A stretch of 64,000 nucleotides of DNA from IMGVR_UViG_3300032242_003291:124001-188000; one strand, 5' to 3'; positions 7,696 through 35,656 are shown, counted from the first letter of the stretch. Notes: generated from the sequence alone by a model not told the origin. Numbers and translations are program-made.

Positions 7696-7765
7696 TTAAA
7701 CTTGTCTCATACAAATAAAAATTCCCCTGAGGATTCAGAGGAATTTTCAACTATTCAATTAATTC

Positions 7766-8230
7766 TTATTTCAAGAATCTTAATTTATATAAGGTTGAAA
7801 AGATTAACTCTTGAACTCCGTCGATTTGATTTTGAATATAAGATTCTTTGACAGCCTTTCTGTTTTTTTCTATATTATCATCCAAATCTTTGAAATAACT
7901 TATTAACTGTTCAGTTGATTTATAATCAACCATTTTAACCGTTTTATATCCTGTAATCAAGTCATGTTTTCCTTGATAACTTTCAACAATACCATCGATT
8001 AACTCAACAATTTCATCATAGTAAGTTCCTAAAGCCATGTGTTCTGCAAACGATGATTGAGATTTTGTTTGCCAATGAAAAATATGGGCCTGACTTCTTG
8101 AATGAAGTAATGTAGCAATCATATCAACAACATCCGCTGTTTCAGTTGTTTCTTCTTCTTTTTTTTCAGCCTCGTTCAAGTGCATCACTTTGAACAACTG
8201 CTCCTTTGTTAATGTTAATTTTTTTTCCAT
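7766..8230 (-). CDS. Ferritin/Dps-like four-helix-bundle protein (phage DUF5856-like)
   Basis: LHSRSQAHIFHWQT, EHMALGTYYDEI…DGIVESYQG, TLYKLRFL; start corrected to 8230. Confidence 0.7.
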   Translation of the reverse strand: MEKKLTLTKEQLFKVMHLNEAEKKEEETTETADVVDMIATLLHSRSQAHIFHWQTKSQSSFAEHMALGTYYDEIVELIDGIVESYQGKHDLITGYKTVKMVDYKSTEQLISYFKDLDDNIEKNRKAVKESYIQNQIDGVQELIFSTLYKLRFLK

Positions 8231-8249
8231 ACATATAAATATATGGACT

Positions 8250-8324
8250 TGGGTGAATAACGGAAATCGTACCCGTGACAACTAAAACCACAATCTAGTG
8301 CTCTACCAACTGAGATATATTCCA
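8250..8324 (-). pseudogene. Degenerate tRNA-His(GUG)
   Basis: Cloverleaf with GTG anticodon, but mismatched pairs 1-72 and 2-71, no G-1, D-stem mismatch, T-loop TACGATT. Confidence 0.7.
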
Positions 8325-9749: not shown

Positions 9750-9965
9750 TTAATACACTTCAATATCTTTCAAAGGTACATCTTCTCCCTGAGTGTGCCT
9801 ATAAACTGTGTTGAAAAATTCTCCTAACAATCTATAGTCCTCAGGAATCATATGACAAAAATCAAATGCAGGAATTGCATCATGAATTTTACCTTGAACT
9901 ACTTTATCCCTTTTATCATCTGGTTTGTATTCAAACACAACATGACCTCTAAAAACATATTTCAT
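9750..9965 (-). CDS. Hypothetical protein
   Basis: 71-aa ORF between tRNA-Glu and tRNA-Phe. Confidence 0.6.
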   Translation of the reverse strand: MKYVFRGHVVFEYKPDDKRDKVVQGKIHDAIPAFDFCHMIPEDYRLLGEFFNTVYRHTQGEDVPLKDIEVY

Positions 9966-9978
9966 AATCTTTATTTTG

Positions 9979-10050
9979 TACCCCCGACGGGAATCGAACC
10001 CGTCTTTTCAGGATGAAAACCTGATGACCTAACCGATAGTCGACAGGGGC
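9979..10050 (-). tRNA. tRNA-Glu(UUC)
   Basis: TCAGG-TTTTCAT-CCTGA anticodon arm. Confidence 0.95.
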
Positions 10051-10059
10051 ATTGTTTCA

Positions 10060-10067
10060 CAAAGATA
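10060..10067 (-). promoter_or_regulatory. Bacteroidota-type -7 promoter box before tRNA-Glu
   Basis: TATCTTTG on minus strand with TTTG about 19 nt upstream. Confidence 0.7.
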
Positions 10068-10087
10068 CAACCAATATTTCAAATAAC

Positions 10088-10124
10088 AAAAAAACCCCGA
10101 ACTTCATTTCTGTCGTTCAGGGCT
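10088..10124 (-). terminator. Intrinsic terminator of attenuator candidate 1
   Basis: AAGCCCTGAAC…GTTCGGGGTTT stem followed by T-tract. Confidence 0.8.
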
Positions 10125-10152
10125 TCTATATATAACTCTCTTCAGGAATTAA

Positions 10153-10251
10153 CTAATCTTGAGGGTCACCGTCTGAACTACGTAGCATACTCTCATACCA
10201 ACAAGTTTCTTGCTGTGTACTAAATTCTATATGTTGCATTGTAGTTTTCAT
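10153..10251 (-). CDS. Putative leader peptide 1 (32 aa) ahead of the Glu-to-Ser tRNA run
   Basis: MKTTMQHIEFSTQQETCWYESMLRSSDGDPQD; promoter upstream, terminator downstream; codons match downstream tRNAs. Confidence 0.7.
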   Translation of the reverse strand: MKTTMQHIEFSTQQETCWYESMLRSSDGDPQD

Positions 10252-10267
10252 GTTATTATAATTATAT

Positions 10268-10275
10268 CAAAGATA
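10268..10275 (-). promoter_or_regulatory. Bacteroidota-type promoter driving leader 1
   Basis: TTTGACAA…TATCTTTG on minus strand, 16 nt before the leader ATG. Confidence 0.7.
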
Positions 10276-10335
10276 GGGAATATCTTCGAATTGTCAAATA
10301 TTTTTTTATTACAGTATTAAGAATATTTATATTTA

Positions 10336-10764
10336 ATGAAGGATTTACGTGAAATAATTAAAGAAACCTTATTGTTAGAAATTGCTGAGGTAATTGGTAA
10401 AATTCGTTCGAATTATGATGGAGAACCTTATGTGTTTAATATAAAAACAACTCATCATTCTAATCAAAGAGGGAGGGGAAGAAATGACATTGAATTTTAT
10501 GATGAAAGAGAAGTAACAAAAGAAGAATTAATGGAATTTTTGAAATTGCACATTAAAGATATTTTGAACTCAATAAAAAACGATAATATTATTTCAAATA
10601 TACCATTTGTTATGAAAAGTAAAAAATGGTCATTGTCTCTTGCAATCGGACCAAATAATAAAAGAGGTAATGTTTGGGACTTTGTAATTATGACCGTTTT
10701 CAGAGAAGGATATAATCAAAAATTAAAAACAGGAAAATACCAATTTATTTTGGATGTTCAATAG
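10336..10764 (+). CDS. Hypothetical protein
   Basis: 142-aa ORF preceded by TATTTATA. Confidence 0.65.
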   Translation: MKDLREIIKETLLLEIAEVIGKIRSNYDGEPYVFNIKTTHHSNQRGRGRNDIEFYDEREVTKEELMEFLKLHIKDILNSIKNDNIISNIPFVMKSKKWSLSLAIGPNNKRGNVWDFVIMTVFREGYNQKLKTGKYQFILDVQ

Positions 10765-10771
10765 TTAGATG

Positions 10772-10852
10772 TGCCCCAAGAGAGATTCGAACTCTCATGA
10801 CTTACGTCACTGGTTCCTAAGACCAGCGTGTCTACCGTTCCACCATCAGGGC
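10772..10852 (-). tRNA. tRNA-Leu(UAG)
   Basis: CTGGT-CTTAGGA-ACCAG anticodon arm, long variable arm. Confidence 0.95.
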
Positions 10853-10856
10853 ATGT

Positions 10857-10947
10857 ATCACATCAGACAGGCATTCTACTTCCCGCAAGCACGAAATTGT
10901 ATCTTATTTAACCCTACGTTAGCGGTACGGGTACCTGAAGATATGAT
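10857..10947 (-). ncRNA. Candidate rod-like structured RNA between HNH gene and tRNA-Leu
   Basis: Nested stems ATCATATC/GATGTGAT, CAGGTA/TGCCTG, CCCGTA/TGCGGG. Confidence 0.5.
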
Positions 10948-10948
10948 T

Positions 10949-11398
10949 TTATTTTTTTATTTTTTTTCTCCCCCTCCATGTAGGAGTTAATGAATGACAA
11001 TTAGGACAAAGAACTTTTAAGTTAGTAATATCATTATTTTTATTATTACCGTCCATATGGTCAACTTCCATACTAATTGGTTTACCCATCCATTCTGTTA
11101 TACCGCATTCTTCACATTTGTTTCCTCTTTCTTCTTTAACCCATTTTTTGATACTCCATATATGTGCAGTTTCATAATTTCGTTTTTTTCTAAATGTTTC
11201 CCTTGATTTAGTTATTTTTTCTGGATTAGAGTTATGACTATAATCACAATTTAACCACCATTCAGATTTAAGAACACCTTCACTAATTTTTTTCTTTATA
11301 TCTTCCGTTCTTATTCTTGAATTAGCACAAGATTTAGAACAAAATTTACCACTACCAAAAGAACCATCATGTTCTTTTTCGCATTTTAAGCATTTCAT
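10949..11398 (-). CDS. Free-standing HNH endonuclease with N-terminal Cys-rich zinc finger
   Basis: CLKC…FCSKSC N-terminus; CEECG…EVDHMDGNNKNNDITNLKVLCPNCH HNH motif. Confidence 0.9.
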   Translation of the reverse strand: MKCLKCEKEHDGSFGSGKFCSKSCANSRIRTEDIKKKISEGVLKSEWWLNCDYSHNSNPEKITKSRETFRKKRNYETAHIWSIKKWVKEERGNKCEECGITEWMGKPISMEVDHMDGNNKNNDITNLKVLCPNCHSLTPTWRGRKKIKK

Positions 11399-11402
11399 AA
11401 TT

Positions 11403-11439
11403 GAACTATAATTTATTTATTATAAATAGTCAATAGTTC
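11403..11439 (-). promoter_or_regulatory. Hairpin enclosing TATTTATA and covering the HNH translation-initiation region
   Basis: GAACTAT…TATTTATA…ATAGTTC, 3' arm ends 4 nt before ATG. Confidence 0.55.
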
Positions 11440-11455
11440 GATTATAAGTTATTAG

Positions 11456-11527
11456 TAGTCCCACCAAGACTCGAACTTGGAACATTTCATTAGAAGTGAA
11501 AAGTTATATCCCTTTAACTATAGGACC
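11456..11527 (-). tRNA. tRNA-Arg(UCU)
   Basis: TTTCA-CTTCTAA-TGAAA anticodon arm. Confidence 0.95.
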
Positions 11528-11555
11528 AATATATTACAAAGATAAGGAAAAAAAA

Positions 11556-12296
11556 CTATTCGGCAAAACTTTCTTCGTATATTGTATCTGTATCGTTTTC
11601 TTCTGTATTGTAAGTGTGAACTAACTCAATTTCCATATTATTAAAATTAAATATAAATTCACCATCAGAACCTTCATTTATTTCCCACCCACCATAGTAA
11701 TTTTCAAGTTGTCTATAACACCAATCTTCTATGTCTGTTGGTACTCCATCGCTTGTTTCATCAAAACTACTTTCAATATATCCTGAGTCACCAGAACCAT
11801 TATATTTTACTGTCAATATTCCTCCATTAGGTACTTGAATATCTTCAAAAACACCATCTTTCTCCCACTCTTCGAATATTTCCTGACCATCCTCATCCAC
11901 CCAATGATGAGCACTTGAATCACTTTTTGCATAAAATGTCCACCAATGTTTCACAGATATTTCCTGTGTTTTACTGTCTATATCAAATTCAATTCTTTCA
12001 TAATTCAAATCTTGTTCGTTAGGTTCTTTGAATAAATTTTTGTCTTCAATATAATCTCCAATTTTTTTAAGGATTTGTGTTAATCCATTAGGAATTTCAG
12101 CACTGTAGTTGTTTGAAAAATGAGTTTCTTGTTGCCAATTTATATCGGAAAAATTGAAATCAGACCATCCGTCAATATCCAATTCAATACTGCCATCTCT
12201 CATTCCAAGTGATGACAAGTATCTACAGACTCTTCTGAGGTATTGTTTATCCTCAGGGGTTAATATATTAAACGAATTTACATTTCTTTTTTTCAT
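11556..12296 (-). CDS. Acidic protein with C-terminal DUF6878-like domain
   Basis: VKYNGSGDSGYIE…GGWEINEGSDGEF pattern. Confidence 0.6.
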   Translation of the reverse strand: MKKRNVNSFNILTPEDKQYLRRVCRYLSSLGMRDGSIELDIDGWSDFNFSDINWQQETHFSNNYSAEIPNGLTQILKKIGDYIEDKNLFKEPNEQDLNYERIEFDIDSKTQEISVKHWWTFYAKSDSSAHHWVDEDGQEIFEEWEKDGVFEDIQVPNGGILTVKYNGSGDSGYIESSFDETSDGVPTDIEDWCYRQLENYYGGWEINEGSDGEFIFNFNNMEIELVHTYNTEENDTDTIYEESFAE

Positions 12297-12307
12297 ATAA
12301 ATAAATA

Positions 12308-12934
12308 TTACTCAAAATCTTCTTTCCATGAATCCTTATGATAGTTGAATAACTTAAAATCCTTTTCCAATTTTTCATAAACATAATCAGCAATTTCTTG
12401 GTCATAGTATGTTTTCCAACTAGGTCTATCAGATTTGAATTTATTAACTTTAATAAACTTGTTGAAGGATTCAGTTAATATATCCATATTGTCTCTAATT
12501 ATTGATAATGATTTCAAATCAGATTCTAAATGTTCGTATCTAATATAATATTTTGGTGCCATCGGCATTGCTTTTAGTGCATCGTGACATCTTGTATGCC
12601 AATAATTTTTGTTTGGTTTACCCTGAAATGAATCGCTTGTTGGATTATTAATTGGGTCTGAAAAAACAAATTCCAACCATTCTCTGTAATTCAAATCTTT
12701 TGTATGATGAACTTCAAAAAAATGCCAGTGTGAATGTAATGACGTAAGTCTTGAATATGGATTTCTTATGTTTACATATAAATCATAGTCATCTTTTCCT
12801 TTTTCACGTGGCATTGCAATCTCATGTAAATGAGATTCTGAAAAATTTAACAACTTCATCAATTCAAATGTGGCCCTTGATGCAGTTCTTTCAGGTATTA
12901 ACCATATTACTTTGTATTTGTCTGAATAATTCAT
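12308..12934 (-). CDS. Sulfotransferase-family-like protein
   Basis: IPERTASRA, VNIRNPYSRLTS, IRYEHLESDL, YEKLEKDFKLFNY motifs. Confidence 0.65.
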   Translation of the reverse strand: MNYSDKYKVIWLIPERTASRATFELMKLLNFSESHLHEIAMPREKGKDDYDLYVNIRNPYSRLTSLHSHWHFFEVHHTKDLNYREWLEFVFSDPINNPTSDSFQGKPNKNYWHTRCHDALKAMPMAPKYYIRYEHLESDLKSLSIIRDNMDILTESFNKFIKVNKFKSDRPSWKTYYDQEIADYVYEKLEKDFKLFNYHKDSWKEDFE

Positions 12935-13281
12935 TAATCTTCAATTTTTAGTGTTCTTATCATCCATTGAGGTCTTTGGTTTGTTGCAACATTGTTGACC
13001 CATTCTTTTGCAGATGGTATATAATTATTACAATCTTCCTTAACGTGTTGTTCACCAACATATCTAGTATATACTACCTTACCATCAGAATTTTTGAATT
13101 CTGAACCAAATCTTTTTTCCATCTCAAAAATTCCTTCACTATGATGTCTAAACATTCTGTGTAAAGAATCACCAAACCAACCTTTGGTTTCATCCAACCA
13201 TTCGTGTAAATGAATATAGTCTTCAGGTTTTCCACCAAATTTTTTGGCAGATGATTTTGCGTGTACGTTAGGATGTGCCAT
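12934..13281 (-). CDS. DUF6915-like protein
   Basis: MAHPNVHAKSSAKKFGG…HRMFRHHSEG…GEQHVKED pattern. Confidence 0.7.
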   Translation of the reverse strand: MAHPNVHAKSSAKKFGGKPEDYIHLHEWLDETKGWFGDSLHRMFRHHSEGIFEMEKRFGSEFKNSDGKVVYTRYVGEQHVKEDCNNYIPSAKEWVNNVATNQRPQWMIRTLKIED

Positions 13282-13864
13282 TCTTCCAAGAATCTTTATT
13301 GTAGTTTAATAATATAAAATCTTCCTTCAAATAATCATAAACAAATTGGGCTAATTCATCAGTATAAAATGATTGCCAACTTCTTGGGTCAATACTTTTA
13401 TATGAATTATGACGTATGTGGTTATTAAAAATATATTCTAATTCATCATTAAAATTTTCTTTAATGAACCATAAGTTATTTAAGTCTTCCTCTAACGATT
13501 CAAATCTAACAAAATAATTGGGCATTTTATTCTTAAACGCCTTAACTAAAGAAATATACATTTGTGTTGGTAGAACGTATAAATCATCCATTTCAATGGG
13601 TATTTTTTTTCTAACCCATATTTCAAAGGGGACCTTTTTATCAATTATTTTTGTTTCAATCGAAAAGTTATATATAGAAACTAAACGAGAATAGGGATTT
13701 CTAACATTAGCTGTTAGATAGTAATCCATATACTCAGTGTTATCTATGAACTTATGTTGATTGGAATCGGAAAAATTAAAATATTCCACTATTGGTCTAC
13801 AAGAACGAGTTGCCGCTCTCATTGGTAAAAACCAAAATATTTTTAATTTTTTAGAATATGGCAT
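13268..13864 (-). CDS. Sulfotransferase-family-like protein, paralog of 12308..12934
   Basis: LPMRAATRS, NVRNPYSRLVS, VRFESLEEDL motifs. Confidence 0.65.
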   Translation of the reverse strand: MPYSKKLKIFWFLPMRAATRSCRPIVEYFNFSDSNQHKFIDNTEYMDYYLTANVRNPYSRLVSIYNFSIETKIIDKKVPFEIWVRKKIPIEMDDLYVLPTQMYISLVKAFKNKMPNYFVRFESLEEDLNNLWFIKENFNDELEYIFNNHIRHNSYKSIDPRSWQSFYTDELAQFVYDYLKEDFILLNYNKDSWKNGTS

Positions 13865-14097
13865 TATAAAATTTTCTCGTCTTGTTTTTTTCGAGTTTCA
13901 GACTCTTTTACCATTCTAACCCAAGTCAAAATCACATCGATAGGTGCCAACAACCATGACAAAATTACAACCATTAATACGTCCAAACCTGGAGATAAAC
14001 CAATCTGACCATCGTTGTATTCTTTTTTATACTTTACTCCAAGTTGATAAAAACAATAGAGTAAACTGATAATGTAATAACCAATAAAAATATTCAT
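13864..14097 (-). CDS. Small two-TM membrane protein
   Basis: True start MNIFIGYY at 14097; the longer track ORF runs through tRNA genes. Confidence 0.6.
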   Translation of the reverse strand: MNIFIGYYIISLLYCFYQLGVKYKKEYNDGQIGLSPGLDVLMVVILSWLLAPIDVILTWVRMVKESETRKKQDEKIL

Positions 14098-14111
14098 AAT
14101 AAAAATTTTAG

Positions 14112-14184
14112 AGCCTCCTATCGGAATCGAACCAATGACATTATCATTACAAATGATACGCTCTACCTGCTGAGCTAAGGAGGC
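14112..14184 (-). tRNA. tRNA-Thr(UGU)
   Basis: TATCA-TTTGTAA-TGATA anticodon arm. Confidence 0.95.
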
Positions 14185-14189
14185 AAATA

Positions 14190-14294
14190 TTGGAACTTTG
14201 CGGTATTCCAACTGATGGGTCAGTCCCCACACCTCGGTTCGTGAAATGTAAGTTTCCAACCGATGATACTCTTCTGTCTTACACATTAGTATCC
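14190..14294 (-). ncRNA. Candidate pseudoknotted RNA 3' of tRNA-Gly(GCC)
   Basis: GATACT/AGTATC crossed by GTGTAAG/CTTACAT; further stems TCGGTT/AACCGA and TTGGAA/TTCCAA. Confidence 0.6.
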
Positions 14295-14299
14295 AGATG

Positions 14300-14372
14300 A
14301 GCGGAAGACCAGGCTCGAACTGGCCACCCCAACCTTGGCAAGGTTGTGCTCTACCGAATGAGCTACTTCCGC
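14300..14372 (-). tRNA. tRNA-Gly(GCC)
   Basis: CAACC-TTGCCAA-GGTTG anticodon arm. Confidence 0.95.
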
Positions 14373-14378
14373 TTAAGA

Positions 14379-14425
14379 GTGTAGTGGCGGATATCACACC
14401 TGTGGTTACTACACGTTTTATCCAC
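14379..14425 (-). ncRNA. Candidate H-type pseudoknot 3' of tRNA-Gly(UCC)
   Basis: GTGGATA/TATCCGC crossed by GTGTAGT/ACTACAC. Confidence 0.6.
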
Positions 14426-14429
14426 TTTG

Positions 14430-14502
14430 AGCGGGAGACCAGGCTCGAACTGGCCACCTATAGCTTGGAAGGCTATCGCTCTACCGAATGAGCTACTCCC
14501 GC
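14430..14502 (-). tRNA. tRNA-Gly(UCC)
   Basis: TT-TCC-type loop (CTTCCAA) closed by ATAGC/GCTAT; nearly identical body to tRNA-Gly(GCC). Confidence 0.95.
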
Positions 14503-14504
14503 AT

Positions 14505-14612
14505 GTTCCCGTTTTTTCCTCACATTTAGCCCAATCAACAGTGAGACATTGATTGGATTTTGATTATAGAAGCTTACAAGGTTTCCCCATTAAGCCGTTA
14601 CCACGGGCAAAC
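14505..14612 (-). ncRNA. Candidate multi-stem RNA between tRNA-Asp and tRNA-Gly(UCC)
   Basis: Closing CCCGT/ACGGG, GGCTTA/TAAGCT arm with GAAA loop, CCAATCAA/TTGATTGG arm whose loop CTCAC can pair with GTGAG. Confidence 0.55.
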
Positions 14613-14620
14613 TAATTCAG

Positions 14621-14695
14621 CGGACTAGACGGGACTCGAACCCGCGACCCCAAGCGTGACAAGCTCGTATTCTAACCAAGCTGAACTACCAGTCC
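14621..14695 (-). tRNA. tRNA-Asp(GUC)
   Basis: TT-GTC-AC loop, full cloverleaf, G73. Confidence 0.95.
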
Positions 14696-14701
14696 TTTTT
14701 G

Positions 14702-14773
14702 CTCTTTCTGAGAATTACGATATCTCGACCCCATCATTAACAGTGATGTGCTCTGCCTCTGAGCTAAGAAAGA
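14702..14773 (-). tRNA. tRNA-Asn(GUU) with atypical T-loop
   Basis: CATCA-CTGTTAA-TGATG anticodon arm; T-arm GAGAT-ATCGTAA-TTCTC. Confidence 0.85.
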
Positions 14774-14778
14774 ATCTG

Positions 14779-14851
14779 TAGGGAAGACAGGGTTCGAACC
14801 TGCGACCCCTTGGTCCCAAACCAAGTACGCTACCTACTGCGCTACTTCCCT
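14779..14851 (-). tRNA. tRNA-Pro(UGG)
   Basis: CTTGG-TTTGGGA-CCAAG anticodon arm. Confidence 0.95.
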
Positions 14852-14861
14852 ATTGGTTCAA

Positions 14862-14869
14862 CAAAGATA
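14862..14869 (-). promoter_or_regulatory. Bacteroidota-type -7 promoter box before tRNA-Pro
   Basis: TATCTTTG; a TTG 20 nt upstream lies in the terminator loop. Confidence 0.65.
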
Positions 14870-14871
14870 AT

Positions 14872-14905
14872 AAAAAAACCCTGAACTTTCAAGATTCAGG
14901 GTTTT
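14872..14905 (-). terminator. Intrinsic terminator of attenuator candidate 2
   Basis: AAAACCCTGAAT…GTTCAGGGTTTT stem plus T-tract. Confidence 0.85.
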
Positions 14906-14926
14906 AATATTTGGCTTTATTTGTTA

Positions 14927-15022
14927 TTACCATCCACTAGCTTCTGAACTTAAGCATAAGATACCCGTGCCACCGTTAGTCGGCGTGAATCCCAAATCTG
15001 TATCTAAATTCAAATGTCTCAT
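14927..15022 (-). CDS. Putative leader peptide 2 (31 aa) ahead of the Pro-to-Thr tRNA run
   Basis: MRHLNLDTDLGFTPTNGGTGILCLSSEASGW; TATTTATA upstream, terminator downstream; codons match downstream tRNAs. Confidence 0.7.
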   Translation of the reverse strand: MRHLNLDTDLGFTPTNGGTGILCLSSEASGW

Positions 15023-15035
15023 AGTGTAATAATAT

Positions 15036-15043
15036 TATAAATA
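15036..15043 (-). promoter_or_regulatory. TATTTATA motif (putative late promoter) driving leader 2
   Basis: Motif 13 nt before the leader ATG. Confidence 0.55.
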
Positions 15044-15056
15044 TATCCAAAATCAA

Positions 15057-15728
15057 TTAGTTATTCCCTTTTATAAAAATGTTTCCAGGTTTACTCATAT
15101 CGAACCTCATTACAGGACTCACAAAAGTAGTGTAAAGACGATATCTCCCTTTTGGTAAATAATTACCTGTGTAGTCAAAGTAATAGTTATAAATGGTACT
15201 ATTCAAAGTAACTATGGATGTTTTTAAACCTGTTCCGCCAATTTTGATTAATGATTGTTTGTATGTGTCATTGTTCATCGCATTAACAGGGATAAAGATG
15301 GTAACCCACACACTATTATCATTAATCGTTAAATTATTAATAGTTAATGAATCTATATTATGTGATATAACATTAACAGATTTGACTGAGGGTAGTTGTC
15401 CATTATACCAATATTTCAAATTAATATAATTCAAAACATCATTTTTATTTGCATCTGTAATTCCTGTTCCTAAATTGAATCCTAAAAATGGAAATCTTGT
15501 TGAATGTGTTACTGAATCTTTAAGATATTTCACAATTAAGTCTTGTTTTGATTTTGGTTCAATAAAAATGTAAGCAAGATTATTTGATTCTGATGTTATT
15601 GTGGATTTTGTAACCACATCATTCACTTGAATTGTATTGGTTTGATGGGATACGAAAATATCCTGTTTTGAACAAGAAACCACTGACACGGTTATTACCG
15701 CTGCTAAGATGAATTGTTTTAGTTTCAT
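15057..15728 (-). CDS. Lipoprotein of unknown function
   Basis: Signal peptide with lipobox VVS-C. Confidence 0.7.
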   Translation of the reverse strand: MKLKQFILAAVITVSVVSCSKQDIFVSHQTNTIQVNDVVTKSTITSESNNLAYIFIEPKSKQDLIVKYLKDSVTHSTRFPFLGFNLGTGITDANKNDVLNYINLKYWYNGQLPSVKSVNVISHNIDSLTINNLTINDNSVWVTIFIPVNAMNNDTYKQSLIKIGGTGLKTSIVTLNSTIYNYYFDYTGNYLPKGRYRLYTTFVSPVMRFDMSKPGNIFIKGNN

Positions 15729-16008: not shown

Positions 16009-16079
16009 AATTTTTAATTTTGAAACACAAAGATAACATTTAATTTGATTCTACAAAAATTTTGTTGATATTTATTATT

Positions 16080-16270: not shown

Positions 16271-16759
16271 ATGAGTGGAGTATTGGTGTTGAATTATGAC
16301 TATACCCCTCTAAATGTAACAACAATTAGGAGGGGATTTGTTCTTGTGGATAAGGGTAGGGCCGAAATTATAAAATCGGACGAAAATCCTATTGTCACAG
16401 GTTACAAAACATACGTACGCCCTGTTATAATCAGATTGTTGAATTATATTAGACATAAATCAAGATTGTTGAGGGCAAATAGAACAAGAATCTACAAACG
16501 CGACCAATACCAATGTGTATATTGCGGTTCAAATAAGGATTTAACCTTAGACCACGTTATGCCCAAATCAAGGGGTGGTGGAAATGATTGGACAAACCTT
16601 GTAACATCTTGTTTCAAATGTAATCTTAAAAAGGGAAATAAGACTCCTGAAGAAGCTAAGATGTATATGAGACATAAACCACATGTCCCAACCATCATGG
16701 GGGATGATGGCAAATTATTAAACGTTTGGAATGATTATCAAAAATCCTTTTTTTCATAA
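16271..16759 (+). CDS. HNH endonuclease (McrA-like family)
   Basis: VLVLNYDYTPL N-terminus; RDQYQCVYCG…LTLDHVMPKSRGG…WTNLVTSCFKCN. Confidence 0.9.
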   Translation: MSGVLVLNYDYTPLNVTTIRRGFVLVDKGRAEIIKSDENPIVTGYKTYVRPVIIRLLNYIRHKSRLLRANRTRIYKRDQYQCVYCGSNKDLTLDHVMPKSRGGGNDWTNLVTSCFKCNLKKGNKTPEEAKMYMRHKPHVPTIMGDDGKLLNVWNDYQKSFFS

Positions 16760-17366: not shown

Positions 17367-19040
17367 ATGAGGGCATTAGGATTTTCTGTTGGCCATGATA
17401 AGGGCGCAGTTATAATTGAAGATGGCAAGGTTCTTGTTGGTATTACACAAGAAAGATTGACAAGAATAAAGCATGACGGAGCATATCAAGGGGGGAAAAT
17501 TCCTACCGAATCAATAAATTATTGCCTAAATTATTTGGGAATAACTTACAAGGATATCGATGTATTTGTATACAGTACAACAGAAATGATTGATGATGTA
17601 GATGACCAAATTAGAAAATTTTTTAAGTCCGATTTATCAGGTAAAACAACTTTTATACCTCACCATTTAGCACACGCATATTCATCTTTTTTCAGTTCGG
17701 GATTTGATGATGCTGCGGTTATTGTTGCAGACGCATCAGGAAGTATTCTTAACCTTTCAAACAAATTACCTAATTGGTATAAGGACGTTAAAAATGATGG
17801 TATAGATACAGAAGAAGATTGGACTGAAGGAATCTCAATATATAATTTCAAGAAAAATGAATATAATGAAGTTTATAAAAAATGGATAAAATATCCTGTA
17901 CCCTTAGAAACCGAGGATGGTGTGTCCCTTGGGACAATTTATTCTGAGGGTTCTTTACAATTAGTTTATGAATCAAATTTGCATACATGGCCTGCTGGTA
18001 AATTAATGGGATTAGCTTCTTATGCAAATCCTGAAATTGTTGAAGAAGCTCCTCCATTTGTAATTGAAAAAGACGATGATATTTTTATTCCAAATAAAAG
18101 AATTTATCCAAGAGTAGATTGGAGTTGCGATTTTTATTCAAGAGCATGTGTTGCAGGAATATATCAAAGAGAACAAGAAAGGGCAAGTTTAATTTTAGCA
18201 AACATGGCAAAAAAATTAACTAAATCAAATAATGTTTGTGTTGCTGGTGGTTCATTCTTGAATTGCAATTCCAACGAAAAAATATTGAATTCAGGTTTAT
18301 TTGAAGGGTGTTATTTTATTCCACCGTCAGACGACAGTGGAATTCCATTAGGATGTGCATGGTACGGTTATCAAAAATTAATTGATGTTGAACAAACAGA
18401 AATGTTGAGTCCTTATTTAGGTAAAACATATTCGGAGAAAGAAATTATTACAACAATTAATGAAAATCCATATTTGATTTTCGATAGGTATGATGATTTT
18501 AGTTTATTGAGTGAGGATGTATCTTATTGGTTATCTCAAAATAGAGTTATTGGTTGGTTTCAAGATGGTTCAGAAATTGGTCCGAGAGCCTTAGGAAATC
18601 GTTCTATATTAGCATCTCCAATCCATTCATGGATGACTGGACATATTAATTCAGATATTAAAAAAAGGGAATGGTATCGACCATTTGCGCCAGCTGTTTT
18701 ATTTGAACATCAATCAGAAATTTTTGAATCAGACGTATATTCACCTTACATGTTGGTTACTACATCAGTTAAAAAAGAATGGAAAAGCAAAATACCTGCG
18801 GTTACACACATAGATAATTCAGCAAGACATCAATCCGTGACTGAAACAAACAATCCAAAATTTTATTCTTTAATTAAAAATTTTTATAATAAGACTGGAG
18901 TTCCTGTTCTATTGAATACAAGCTTCAATGGTCCGAAAGAACCAATTGTTGAAACTCCTCAGGATGCCATAAATACATTTATGGAAACTGGCTTGGATTT
19001 TTTAGTTATCGGTAATATTTTAATTAAAAAGAAACCATAA
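17367..19040 (+). CDS. Carbamoyltransferase (NodU/CmcH/TobZ family)
   Basis: GHDKGA, QERLTRIKH, HHLAHAYS, EIGPRALGNRSILA, KKREWYRPFAP, VLLNTSFN motifs. Confidence 0.92.
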   Translation: MRALGFSVGHDKGAVIIEDGKVLVGITQERLTRIKHDGAYQGGKIPTESINYCLNYLGITYKDIDVFVYSTTEMIDDVDDQIRKFFKSDLSGKTTFIPHHLAHAYSSFFSSGFDDAAVIVADASGSILNLSNKLPNWYKDVKNDGIDTEEDWTEGISIYNFKKNEYNEVYKKWIKYPVPLETEDGVSLGTIYSEGSLQLVYESNLHTWPAGKLMGLASYANPEIVEEAPPFVIEKDDDIFIPNKRIYPRVDWSCDFYSRACVAGIYQREQERASLILANMAKKLTKSNNVCVAGGSFLNCNSNEKILNSGLFEGCYFIPPSDDSGIPLGCAWYGYQKLIDVEQTEMLSPYLGKTYSEKEIITTINENPYLIFDRYDDFSLLSEDVSYWLSQNRVIGWFQDGSEIGPRALGNRSILASPIHSWMTGHINSDIKKREWYRPFAPAVLFEHQSEIFESDVYSPYMLVTTSVKKEWKSKIPAVTHIDNSARHQSVTETNNPKFYSLIKNFYNKTGVPVLLNTSFNGPKEPIVETPQDAINTFMETGLDFLVIGNILIKKKP

Positions 19041-32074: not shown

Positions 32075-32676
32075 GCAAACACAATATAAAATTGATTTAT
32101 TTTCATTGCAAATTTATCCATCAAACTATTAACTCTACTCATATCTTCAAAATCAAGGTCTTTTGATTCCATGTACTTCATAAGTCCTTGAATCATTTTG
32201 AATTTAGATTCGTCTGCCATTTCTAAAACTTCTTGAAATGCTTCATTATCTTCTTCATCTTCACCATAATATCTATCTATCCATTCTTTTCCCGAATATA
32301 AAAACGGTGCAGCCTGAAACATATTTATAACGCTAGACTCTCTAAGTTTTAATAAATATTTTTTGAAAAATTTGTAATCAAAATTCTCAAATACATCAGG
32401 ATTTTTTTGGAAATAATCATACTCTTTTGAACCAGTTTGTTCTTTAATATTTTCTTTTGGTGCAAGTTTCCAAGCATCTGTTGAAGATATAAGTGCAAGT
32501 CCGCTCCCGTTATCCCATTTAACGTTAATTAGAACGTCATCAGCGGATTCGAATGGGTCTCTACCTATTCTTGTAACAGTTCCATGAGTACCTGGAGGAA
32601 CTCCTGTTTCACCTTCCATATGGAAGCAGATTATTCTATCACCTACGTTAACTTTTGGATTTAATGGACCTTTCAT
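32071..32676 (-). CDS. DUF4314-like domain fused to a DUF5049-like helical domain
   Basis: VPPGTHGTV…VKWDNGSGLALI and LRESSVINMF patterns; start corrected. Confidence 0.55.
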   Translation of the reverse strand: MKGPLNPKVNVGDRIICFHMEGETGVPPGTHGTVTRIGRDPFESADDVLINVKWDNGSGLALISSTDAWKLAPKENIKEQTGSKEYDYFQKNPDVFENFDYKFFKKYLLKLRESSVINMFQAAPFLYSGKEWIDRYYGEDEEDNEAFQEVLEMADESKFKMIQGLMKYMESKDLDFEDMSRVNSLMDKFAMKINQFYIVFA

Positions 32677-32710
32677 ACTAATAAATATATTGAGTATATT
32701 TATAATCAAT

Positions 32711-35152: not shown

Positions 35153-35656
35153 ATGTCGTTAAAAGAAGAAATACTAAAACTTAAAGAAAAAGGATATTCT
35201 TATCAACAGATTCAAAAATCTCTGGGATGTAGTAAATCAACAATATCGTATCATTTAGGTGATAATCAAAAAGAAAGGGCTTACAATAGGGTTAAAAAAC
35301 AGAGAAAATTAAATCCTTGGTTGCATAAGACGGAAAAGTTCTTACAAGAATATGAGGGTAAGAAAATAACTTATAATCGAAGAGGTGATTTTGATAGGAA
35401 AAAATTAAAAGAATATTTATCGTCAGTAGATAAATGTTATTTGACGGGCAGACCAATTGATATTAATAATTTTAATACATATGAGTTTGACCATATAACT
35501 CCAAGATTGTTAGGTGGTAAAAGTTCTTTTGATAATTTAGGGATTGCTCGTCCCGAAGCAAATAGAGCAAAAAACGATTTAACCGTTGATGAATTTATTG
35601 AACTTTGTAAAGATGTTTTAGTAAATTTTGGTTATATTGTTAATAAAAAAATATAG
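35153..35656 (+). CDS. HNH endonuclease with N-terminal helix-turn-helix
   Basis: GYSYQQIQKSLGCSKSTISYHL; CYLTG…EFDHITPRLLGG…NLGIARPEANRAK. Confidence 0.85.
   Translation: MSLKEEILKLKEKGYSYQQIQKSLGCSKSTISYHLGDNQKERAYNRVKKQRKLNPWLHKTEKFLQEYEGKKITYNRRGDFDRKKLKEYLSSVDKCYLTGRPIDINNFNTYEFDHITPRLLGGKSSFDNLGIARPEANRAKNDLTVDEFIELCKDVLVNFGYIVNKKI

Follow-up and report, generated by a model that had tools for sequence, protein, structure and literature searches.

A putative leader-peptide attenuator sampling several tRNAs ahead of a phage tRNA gene run

Introduction

The 64,000-nt stretch analysed here (IMGVR_UViG_3300032242_003291:124001-188000, referred to throughout as the window, with positions counted from its first letter) comes from a 317-kb IMG/VR contig of 32% G+C, in which most large proteins have no PHROG or Pfam match. 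On its minus strand a short open reading frame (ORF; here leader 2), an intrinsic terminator and six tRNA genes follow one another, all on the same strand, and judging from the sequence and its relatives it is likely that the ORF and terminator constitute a ribosome-mediated transcription attenuator of the trp/his/thr design placed before a phage tRNA run. The in silico evidence consists of the ORF, the match of its codons to the downstream tRNAs together with the position of that match, three competing RNA helices, their covariation and wide conservation. A first-pass annotation had already read the leader as a translated sensor of the downstream tRNAs that gates the terminator. This core reading is supported by our comparative evidence, because 44 distinct leaders sample their own tRNA runs, leader codons track gene content, the antiterminator strand (region 2) covaries, and the start of the ORF is complementary to that strand.

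The role of phage tRNA genes is an open and actively studied question, and the ideas put forward are that they compensate for codon usage, make good the loss of degraded host tRNAs or help the phage to evade defences that cleave tRNA. If the attenuation proposed here is real, these phages treat tRNA shortage as a signal and transcribe the matching tRNA genes in response, and the question becomes directly testable because the sequence of each leader states which tRNAs it monitors. These would then be the first tRNA genes under leader-peptide attenuation and the first attenuators to respond to as many as fourteen or more tRNA species together, and the module would amount to a built-in viral sensor of translational stress. 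With somewhat less confidence, we favour the view that many uncultured phages of Bacteroidota-type hosts, jumbo phages included, carry a codon-sampler attenuator before each tRNA block, such that any shortage would open the whole block.

The leader and its terminator

Leader 2 lies at 15022..14927 (minus strand, like every feature of its module) and comprises 31 codons followed by TAA TAA. As in known attenuators, the short ORF stands directly before the genes that it would regulate, with the terminator between the two. The terminator (14868..14905), which makes up RNA regions 3 and 4, is a strong hairpin with a T-rich tail. Its 12-pair stem (14905..14875) begins 21 nt past the leader stop and is built from a 5' arm at 14905..14894, a loop at 14893..14887 and a 3' arm at 14886..14875; the tail has seven T's (14878..14872), the first four of which also close the stem. 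About 20 nt further on the run opens with tRNA-Pro(tgg) (14778..14851) and continues with tRNA-Asn(gtt) (14701..14773), tRNA-Asp(gtc) (14620..14695), tRNA-Gly(tcc) (14429..14502), tRNA-Gly(gcc) (14299..14372) and finally tRNA-Thr(tgt) (14111..14184).

The annotated reading of codons 5-20 was recovered exactly on the minus strand. In this stretch (14963..15010), which we take as the sampler, 13 of the 16 codons have a cognate among the six downstream tRNAs. Both Gly isoacceptor classes are used, as had been noted, through GGA (codon 11), GGT (codons 17 and 20) and GGC (codon 18). The same annotation had seen in the stretch Pro-Asn-Gly-Gly-Thr an echo of the gene order, which turned out to be a matter of chance: the longest common subsequence was no better than with a shuffled order (P = 0.51), and over eight leader classes codon order did not follow gene order significantly (P = 0.46).

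Leaders in other phages

IMG/VR was scanned with the terminator pattern, which returned 117 stretches, 58 of them with a tRNA gene at most 200 nt downstream. In 55 of these 58 modules a short ORF stops 20-40 nt short of the terminator, and these ORFs give 44 distinct peptides; the other three (L013, L040 and L063) are ordinary protein-gene ends before tRNAs. The peptides fall into about a dozen mutually dissimilar classes, each found before a different kind of tRNA run, and peptides of different classes share nothing but the stretches that form RNA regions 1 and 2. All come from uncultured phages of Bacteroidota-type hosts. Among the 44 leaders the ATG frame is open in every one and the other two frames in only 0 and 1, and the product of the frame-opening shuffle probabilities over 11 leader classes is about 10^-7.6.

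The leader 2 module itself is carried by three other viral contigs (loci L002, L004 and L006). Divergence from the window is concentrated in the middle of the ORF; the promoter region, the terminator and the opening 30 nt of the ORF hardly differ. Although substitutions are many and in-frame indels offset one another, the ORF has kept its 31 codons, of which 19-21 encode Asn, Thr, Gly, Pro or Asp in these relatives. Since the frame is kept open only from the ATG, translation of the leader seems plausible.

A search of bacterial genomes gave, among the first 120 terminator-pattern matches, one true module (L226) and three unrelated alphaproteobacterial terminator-tRNA pairs. L226 lies on a 375-kb contig (JAVTWD010000016.1, 264001-272000) that was binned as a Bacteroidota metagenome-assembled genome but could belong to a misbinned jumbo phage. 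Its run has eight tRNAs (His, two Ser, Tyr and four Leu), and the middle of its leader, made up of Leu, Ser, His and Tyr codons alone, accounts for seven of the eight isoacceptors; the eighth, Leu(gag), is covered by a CTC codon in the leader tail.

Codon content and the tRNAs behind the leader

Taking all leaders together, 713 of their 1327 codons match a tRNA of the run that follows, against 478.6 expected from window codon usage, and nearly every tRNA of a leader's own run is sampled at least once (for example 14/14, 14/14, 10/10 and 8/8). Single leaders were judged against random segments of the real ORFs of the window; by this measure the L006 and L024 leaders have a coverage P < 5e-5, and several others reach a joint P < 5e-5. 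The own-run score over seven classes was 6.50, and all 1854 derangements scored lower (mean 3.20, maximum 4.87). Synonymous choice gave 197 strict-wobble codons out of 256, compared with 151.8 expected. For the family as a whole, the sequence statistics appear overwhelming in favour of a match beyond chance.

The match is also confined in position. When leaders are aligned on the GTTCAG core of region 2, a fraction of 0.80-0.93 of the codons is cognate at distances of 12 to 6 codons before the core, and from a distance of 4 codons on the fraction stays at background. With the ATG as reference, codons 2-4 show background values, an increase sets in at codon 5 and the maximum, 80-93%, is reached at codons 13-20 (expected 37%). 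The middle of the ORF is 68% cognate across the family, against 37% expected, and thus holds regulatory codons as attenuator leaders do, here as a sampler of several amino acids. The peak seems to fall just where a ribosome, on stalling, would not yet cover the next RNA element.

Leader codons change together with the genes behind them. L009 has no Arg(acg) gene in its run and no Arg codon in its leader; in L048 a tRNA-Asn has joined the run and the leader has three Asn codons; and the run of L119 starts at Val, without Glu, and its leader is without a Glu codon. The correspondence extends to single isoacceptors: a leader class preceding Leu(taa)-Arg(tct)-Leu(tag) is dominated by TTA, CTT/CTA and AGA codons.

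The window contains a second, paralogous module at 10060..10298 (minus strand), which precedes a tRNA-Glu gene (10050) and ten tRNAs in all: Glu, Phe, Cys, Trp, Tyr, Met, Gln, Arg(acg), His and Ser(gct). Its 32-codon ORF, leader 1 (10251..10153), holds all ten amino acids of the run within codons 5-24, so that 10/10 tRNAs are sampled (P = 9e-4). Over codons 7-24, leader 1 has 14/18 codons cognate to its own run and 2/18 cognate to the Pro run, and leader 2 has 12/18 cognate to its own run and 2/18 cognate to the Glu run. L002 and L006 have tRNAs for Val, Lys and Ile added to the corresponding run, and their leader 1 counterparts have acquired codons for the same three amino acids, at positions where leader 1 of the window has other residues. 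The region 2 core of leader 1 (GTTCAG, 10178..10173) lies at nt 74 from the ATG, the same distance as in leader 2, and its terminator (10122..10088) belongs to the same family. The module has a host-type promoter before the ORF (10298..10268) and a second one behind the terminator (10090..10060).

Competing RNA helices

Three mutually competing helices, 1:2, 2:3 (the antiterminator) and 3:4 (the terminator), are supported by the predicted pairings and their behaviour across the family. Region 1 (TTTGAATTTAG, codons 3-7, 15004..15014) is complementary to region 2 and would act as the anti-antiterminator strand; region 2 (TTAAGTTCAGA, 14943..14953) is a partial copy of the terminator 3' arm and would act as the antiterminator strand. 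Within the latter, AAGTTCAG (14951..14944) can pair with its partner in the terminator, CTGAATCTT (14899..14891), through 8 bp with one bulge, as the first-pass annotation had it, or through six contiguous pairs that include one G.U. In L002, L004 and L006, AGATTCAG takes the place of AAGTTCAG and pairs perfectly with the terminator sequence CTGAATCT. The minimum-free-energy fold of the full leader has the terminator formed and the AAGTTCAG strand paired with nt 9-19 of the ORF, that is, region 1 (-36.3 kcal/mol, z = -2.4). The first base of the antiterminator strand, numbered from the ATG, is nt 71-77 in most leaders; in seven it is nt 80-90.

Helices 1:2 and 2:3 are supported because they survive swap tests, and 2:3 also by covariation and by modules with unrelated terminators; the covariation and swap counts were made by script. 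The bases just 5' of the GTTCAG core covary with the first bases of the terminator loop (AG/CT, AT/AT, GT/AC, AGA/TCT), and at these helix-extension positions 43 of 50 pairs are Watson-Crick, against 29.2 +/- 2.2 after permutation (0/5000 permutations). The mean 2:3 helix is 7.20 bp with a leader's own terminator arm and 6.26 +/- 0.14 bp when arms are swapped. There is also a compensatory change from CTGAAC/GTTCAG to CCGAAC/GTTCGG, in which the arm CCGAAC goes with region 2 GTTCGG. In four modules with unrelated terminators, region 2 copies the 3' arm of its own terminator (GGATTTAG, GGTTTGGG, GGGGTG and GTCTCGA). For helix 1:2, the family mean duplex energy is -10.14 kcal/mol with the own partner, -7.38 +/- 0.38 with swapped partners and -6.31 with shuffled ones. 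The module therefore has what characterizes an attenuator at the RNA level, namely an antiterminator that excludes the terminator and covaries with it, and a strand inside the ORF that pairs with region 2.

RNAalifold applied to 20 leaders of class P, that of leader 2, returned the terminator only, which is invariant there because the search pattern had fixed its sequence; evidence on the terminator was therefore taken from modules with other terminators.

The pairing of helix 1:2 bears on some codons that had been thought to sense tRNAs. Codon 2 of leader 2 is indeed AGA and its Leu codons are indeed TTG and TTA, as annotated, but within regions 1 and 2 cognate codons are at background, and a sensing role for these codons did not hold. 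They are better explained by the helix: the conserved non-cognate codons at the N-terminus, TTG and TTA included, are accounted for by the complementarity of the ORF start to its own region 2. A suggested check, that a tRNA-Leu(UAA) might follow the homologous leader in related phages, came out negative, as in relatives this gene sits in the next run, beyond a protein gene and a promoter of its own; in some lineages it stands behind the dedicated Leu/Arg leader.

Two further features of the class-P RNA deserve mention. One pair of the terminator stem (alignment columns 146/164) is U.G in 15 of 20 terminators (GTTCGGGG being the 3' arm), and opposite this position region 2 always offers an A (GTTCAG), so that the antiterminator makes a better pair there than the U.G of the stem, which may represent kinetic tuning. 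In addition, the last leader codons (GGATGG or GGTTGG) and the conserved AAGCCAAA behind the stop can form a small hairpin (14911-14940, minus strand) with the stop codon in its loop; it is conserved across class-P leaders and may act in pausing or help to stabilise the antiterminator.

Promoters and translation starts

The motif TATTTATA (15036..15043, minus strand), 13 nt before the ATG of leader 2, is a candidate promoter element; the window has 24 copies where 11 would be expected, most of them 4-20 nt ahead of an ORF start, and TATTTAT is found 5-15 nt before the ATG in 29 of the 44 leaders. A consensus scan also gave a sigma-70-like match, TTGATT-16-TATTAT (15029..15056, minus strand), which overlaps TATTTATA and is conserved in L002, L004 and L006, though it may not be relevant in a Bacteroidota-type host. 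If it is used, its -10 element ends 6 nt before the ATG and the mRNA would be nearly leaderless. The Bacteroidota consensus TTTG-N19-21-TAnnTTTG occurs 16 times in the window (3.1 expected), mostly before ORFs.

The first-pass annotation assigned a host-type promoter to leader 1 and TATTTATA to leader 2, which is correct, and from this proposed different timing of the two, which did not stand. One and the same leader class has a host-type promoter in the window and TATTTATA in relatives, so the basis for the timing is not conserved, and for TATTTATA as a late motif nothing was found that showed lateness.

As an observation apart, TTGAY-N17-19-TATTTAT occurs five times in the window against 0.4 expected (548-576, 16045-16075, 32352-32381, 32681-32709 and 35391-35420), and several leaders of other phages have TTGACA-N17-TATTTA. 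This suggests a sigma-70-like class of promoters, separate from the host TTTG/TAnnTTTG type, in which TATTTAT may serve as the downstream element.

Shine-Dalgarno motifs precede 3% of window ORFs, against 8% of random positions, and the regions upstream of ORFs are A-rich. Given this rarity throughout the window, the missing ribosome-binding site is no argument against translation of the leader.

Proposed mechanism

Leader translation, ribosome stalling, a change in read-through and the cause of tRNA depletion are what we infer from the sequence, as follows. Transcription would begin just upstream of the leader ATG, and a ribosome would translate the 31 codons, of which codons 5-20 sample codons for the Pro, Asn, Asp and Thr tRNAs and for both Gly classes. 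When all the charged tRNAs are plentiful, the ribosome would reach the stop and cover region 2 (14953..14943), leaving region 3 free for region 4; the terminator would form and transcription would halt about 20 nt before tRNA-Pro. When any one tRNA is scarce, the ribosome would stall in the sampler with its leading edge short of region 2 and with region 1 covered or unwound, so that region 2 could pair with nascent region 3, the terminator would be blocked and the polymerase could read into the tRNA genes. On an untranslated leader, regions 1 and 2 would pair and the terminator would form.

The net logic would be an OR-gate with negative feedback that holds phage tRNA supply to demand: as the sampler has codons for every tRNA of the block, a shortage of any one would open the gate, and as the gate releases the same tRNAs that are sensed, the loop would be self-limiting. 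Conceivable causes of the shortage are tRNA-cleaving host defences, host tRNA decay induced by the phage and mismatched codon usage. In several relatives the first tRNA begins 8-14 nt past the terminator, with no room for a separate promoter, and read-through is therefore the only visible route to those tRNAs.

Between terminator and first tRNA, 18 of 43 modules carry a motif GTTCTTTGA(A/C)ATATTGG, in the window at 10068-10083 (minus strand) and also in L024, L103, L088, L045 and others. It sometimes lies inside the spacer of a host-type promoter, and could be a processing signal or a binding site.

Weighing the attenuator against other explanations

Several points weigh against the attenuator. 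Taken alone, leader 2 is statistically weak, with 14/30 codons cognate (P = 0.08), 6/6 tRNAs sampled (P = 0.24) and a joint P of 0.034, so that for this single leader a match beyond chance appears modest. Its antiterminator is weaker than those of its relatives, as it needs a G.U or a bulge, and when the terminator 3' arm is removed the fold pairs AAGTTCAG with the 5' arm no better than shuffled sequences do (z = 0.17); this truncated fold is stronger in L002 than in the window. The L002 leader has Asp codons and its run lacks tRNA-Asp. A late stall in the sampler would leave region 1 exposed behind the ribosome, and coupling of transcription and translation in the host is assumed. As to the comparative data, the leaders are related through shared terminator sequences, and the P values given above overstate their independence; run boundaries were set by a 1500-nt gap rule, some loci are truncated and ORF starts were chosen by the analyst.

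Promoters behind the terminator belong to the same set of objections. In the window a candidate host-type promoter overlaps the terminator (14862..14892, minus strand): the loop of the terminator contains its -33 TTG (14892..14890), which lacks the first T of TTTG, and a spacer of 20 nt separates this from the -7 element TATCTTTG (14869..14862). The -7 element is conserved in L002 and several other class-P members and absent in L004 and L020. A full TTTG-N19-21-TAnnTTTG stands between terminator and first tRNA in 15 of 43 modules. Read-through is therefore not the sole route to the tRNAs, and in this phage the weak promoter overlapping the terminator probably adds an unregulated basal level.

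These same promoters, overlapping or following the terminator in the window and in the 15 modules, could also mean that the leader senses tRNAs but acts through another output, such as promoter occlusion or activation, a trans-acting small RNA or a peptide signal. There is precedent for terminated attenuator RNAs that act in trans, as rnTrpL does in other bacteria (PMC6614838). We nevertheless regard such an output as unlikely: several modules have only the 8-14 nt between terminator and tRNA and no promoter, the conserved antiterminator helix is sensible only if termination itself is regulated, and a target for a trans-acting RNA is not evident.

It is less probable still that the ORF is an independent gene for a small functional protein with a terminator of its own, the tRNAs being transcribed separately. 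The peptide is conserved within its class (a P-T-T-P-N-G-D stretch and an S-E-A-S-G-W tail), and a promoter-like element does follow the terminator, but between classes only the region 1 and region 2 stretches are common, the composition tracks the downstream tRNA set and changes with it, the enrichment is limited to the codons set by RNA geometry, and the leader 2 peptide has no PHROG family match at E <= 0.01. That the element is non-coding (a gene for a small RNA, or the upstream gene's own insulating terminator), with ORF and codon content arising by accident, is very improbable. A Shine-Dalgarno sequence is absent before the leader, the terminator family also ends protein genes in the three modules mentioned above and leader 2 is weak alone; but Shine-Dalgarno motifs are scarce genome-wide, the ATG frame alone is kept open, and accident would hardly produce a codon match placed where this one is and covarying with gene content.

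Relation to known attenuators

The attenuator proposed here has, in every structural feature testable in sequence, the appearance of the trp, his, thr and leu attenuators. With the enterobacterial leaders trpL, hisL, thrL, leuL, ilv and pheL it shares a short translated ORF with regulatory codons (translation being predicted here), the mutually exclusive helices 1:2, 2:3 and 3:4, the placing of the regulatory codons just upstream of region 2 and, as proposed, the sensing of a ribosome position that is set by charged-tRNA supply. It differs in its target, as trp/his-type attenuators precede genes for biosynthetic enzymes and the phage module precedes tRNA genes, outside the usual scope of such leaders. 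It differs also in breadth: leaders of the trp/his type repeat one or two amino acids, whereas the phage leaders sample from 5 to about 16 tRNA species, each once to a few times. Further differences are that the regulated product is the sensed molecule, giving direct feedback, and that the host is of the Bacteroidota type, without Shine-Dalgarno sequences. The design thus seems to be a known one, new in controlling tRNA genes and in reading many tRNAs at once.

Control of a component of the translation apparatus, rather than of amino-acid synthesis, by a leader-peptide attenuator is known from pheST of Escherichia coli (pheM leader). That system differs from the phage module in being cellular, in its target, an aminoacyl-tRNA synthetase, and in reading Phe alone. 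T-box riboswitches are alike in turning tRNA status into a choice between terminator and antiterminator upstream of translation-system genes, but each recognizes a single uncharged tRNA by direct contact with a specifier codon and the T-box sequence and needs no translation, whereas the phage module has a conserved ORF; the Rfam T-box model gave no match at E <= 1 within 9900..15200. Rfam found in this region only tRNAs and a weak full-length match to Thr_leader (RF00506) at 14870..14968 (minus strand), over region 2, the terminator and the Thr-rich part of the leader. At 24.1 bits against a gathering threshold of 55 (E = 0.27), this is a likeness of architecture and not membership.

The tRNA clusters of cultured phages (T4, T5, KVP40 and others) resemble the present region in having tRNA runs amid small ORFs and homing endonuclease genes, and to our knowledge leader-peptide control has been described for none of them. 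A blastn search of three modules against 50,697 GenBank phage records found no similar module and only tRNA matches, and nothing beyond tRNA matches came from megablast of the region or from tblastn of the upstream 223-aa protein against GenBank phages. Full-text literature searches gave no description of leader peptides before tRNA genes. If the reading is correct, textbook attenuation extends to tRNA genes as a target, to a multi-input OR-gate with product feedback and to viruses of hosts without Shine-Dalgarno sequences, and the modules, at about 150 nt, might be put to use as natural, programmable devices for sensing how available a given tRNA is.

Other features of the region

Within the run behind leader 2 there are two long spacers on the minus strand, one of 117 nt between the Asp and Gly(tcc) genes (14503-14619) and one of 114 nt between the Gly(gcc) and Thr genes (14185-14298), the latter of the same length in L002; neither has an Rfam match. 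A mechanically called 197-codon ORF with a GTG start (13864-14457, minus strand) overlaps three tRNA genes and shows stops when trimmed, and is almost certainly not a gene.

Elsewhere in the window, a terminator at 7716-7749 (minus strand) stands directly before tRNA-Ser(gct) (7695) and ends an ordinary 171-codon ORF (7766..8281), with no leader ORF. The same arrangement of gene end, terminator and tRNA-Ile/Ser, again with no leader ORF, is present in L011, L017, L019, L022, L036 and L073. In and beside the tRNA region lie HNH homing-endonuclease genes, identified by PHROG matches, at 10949-11398 (minus strand) and 16271-16759 (plus strand). Further along, 17367-19040 (plus strand) encodes a 557-aa NodU/CmcH-like carbamoyltransferase (PHROG 1601, E = 9e-106), an auxiliary metabolic gene in a jumbo phage.

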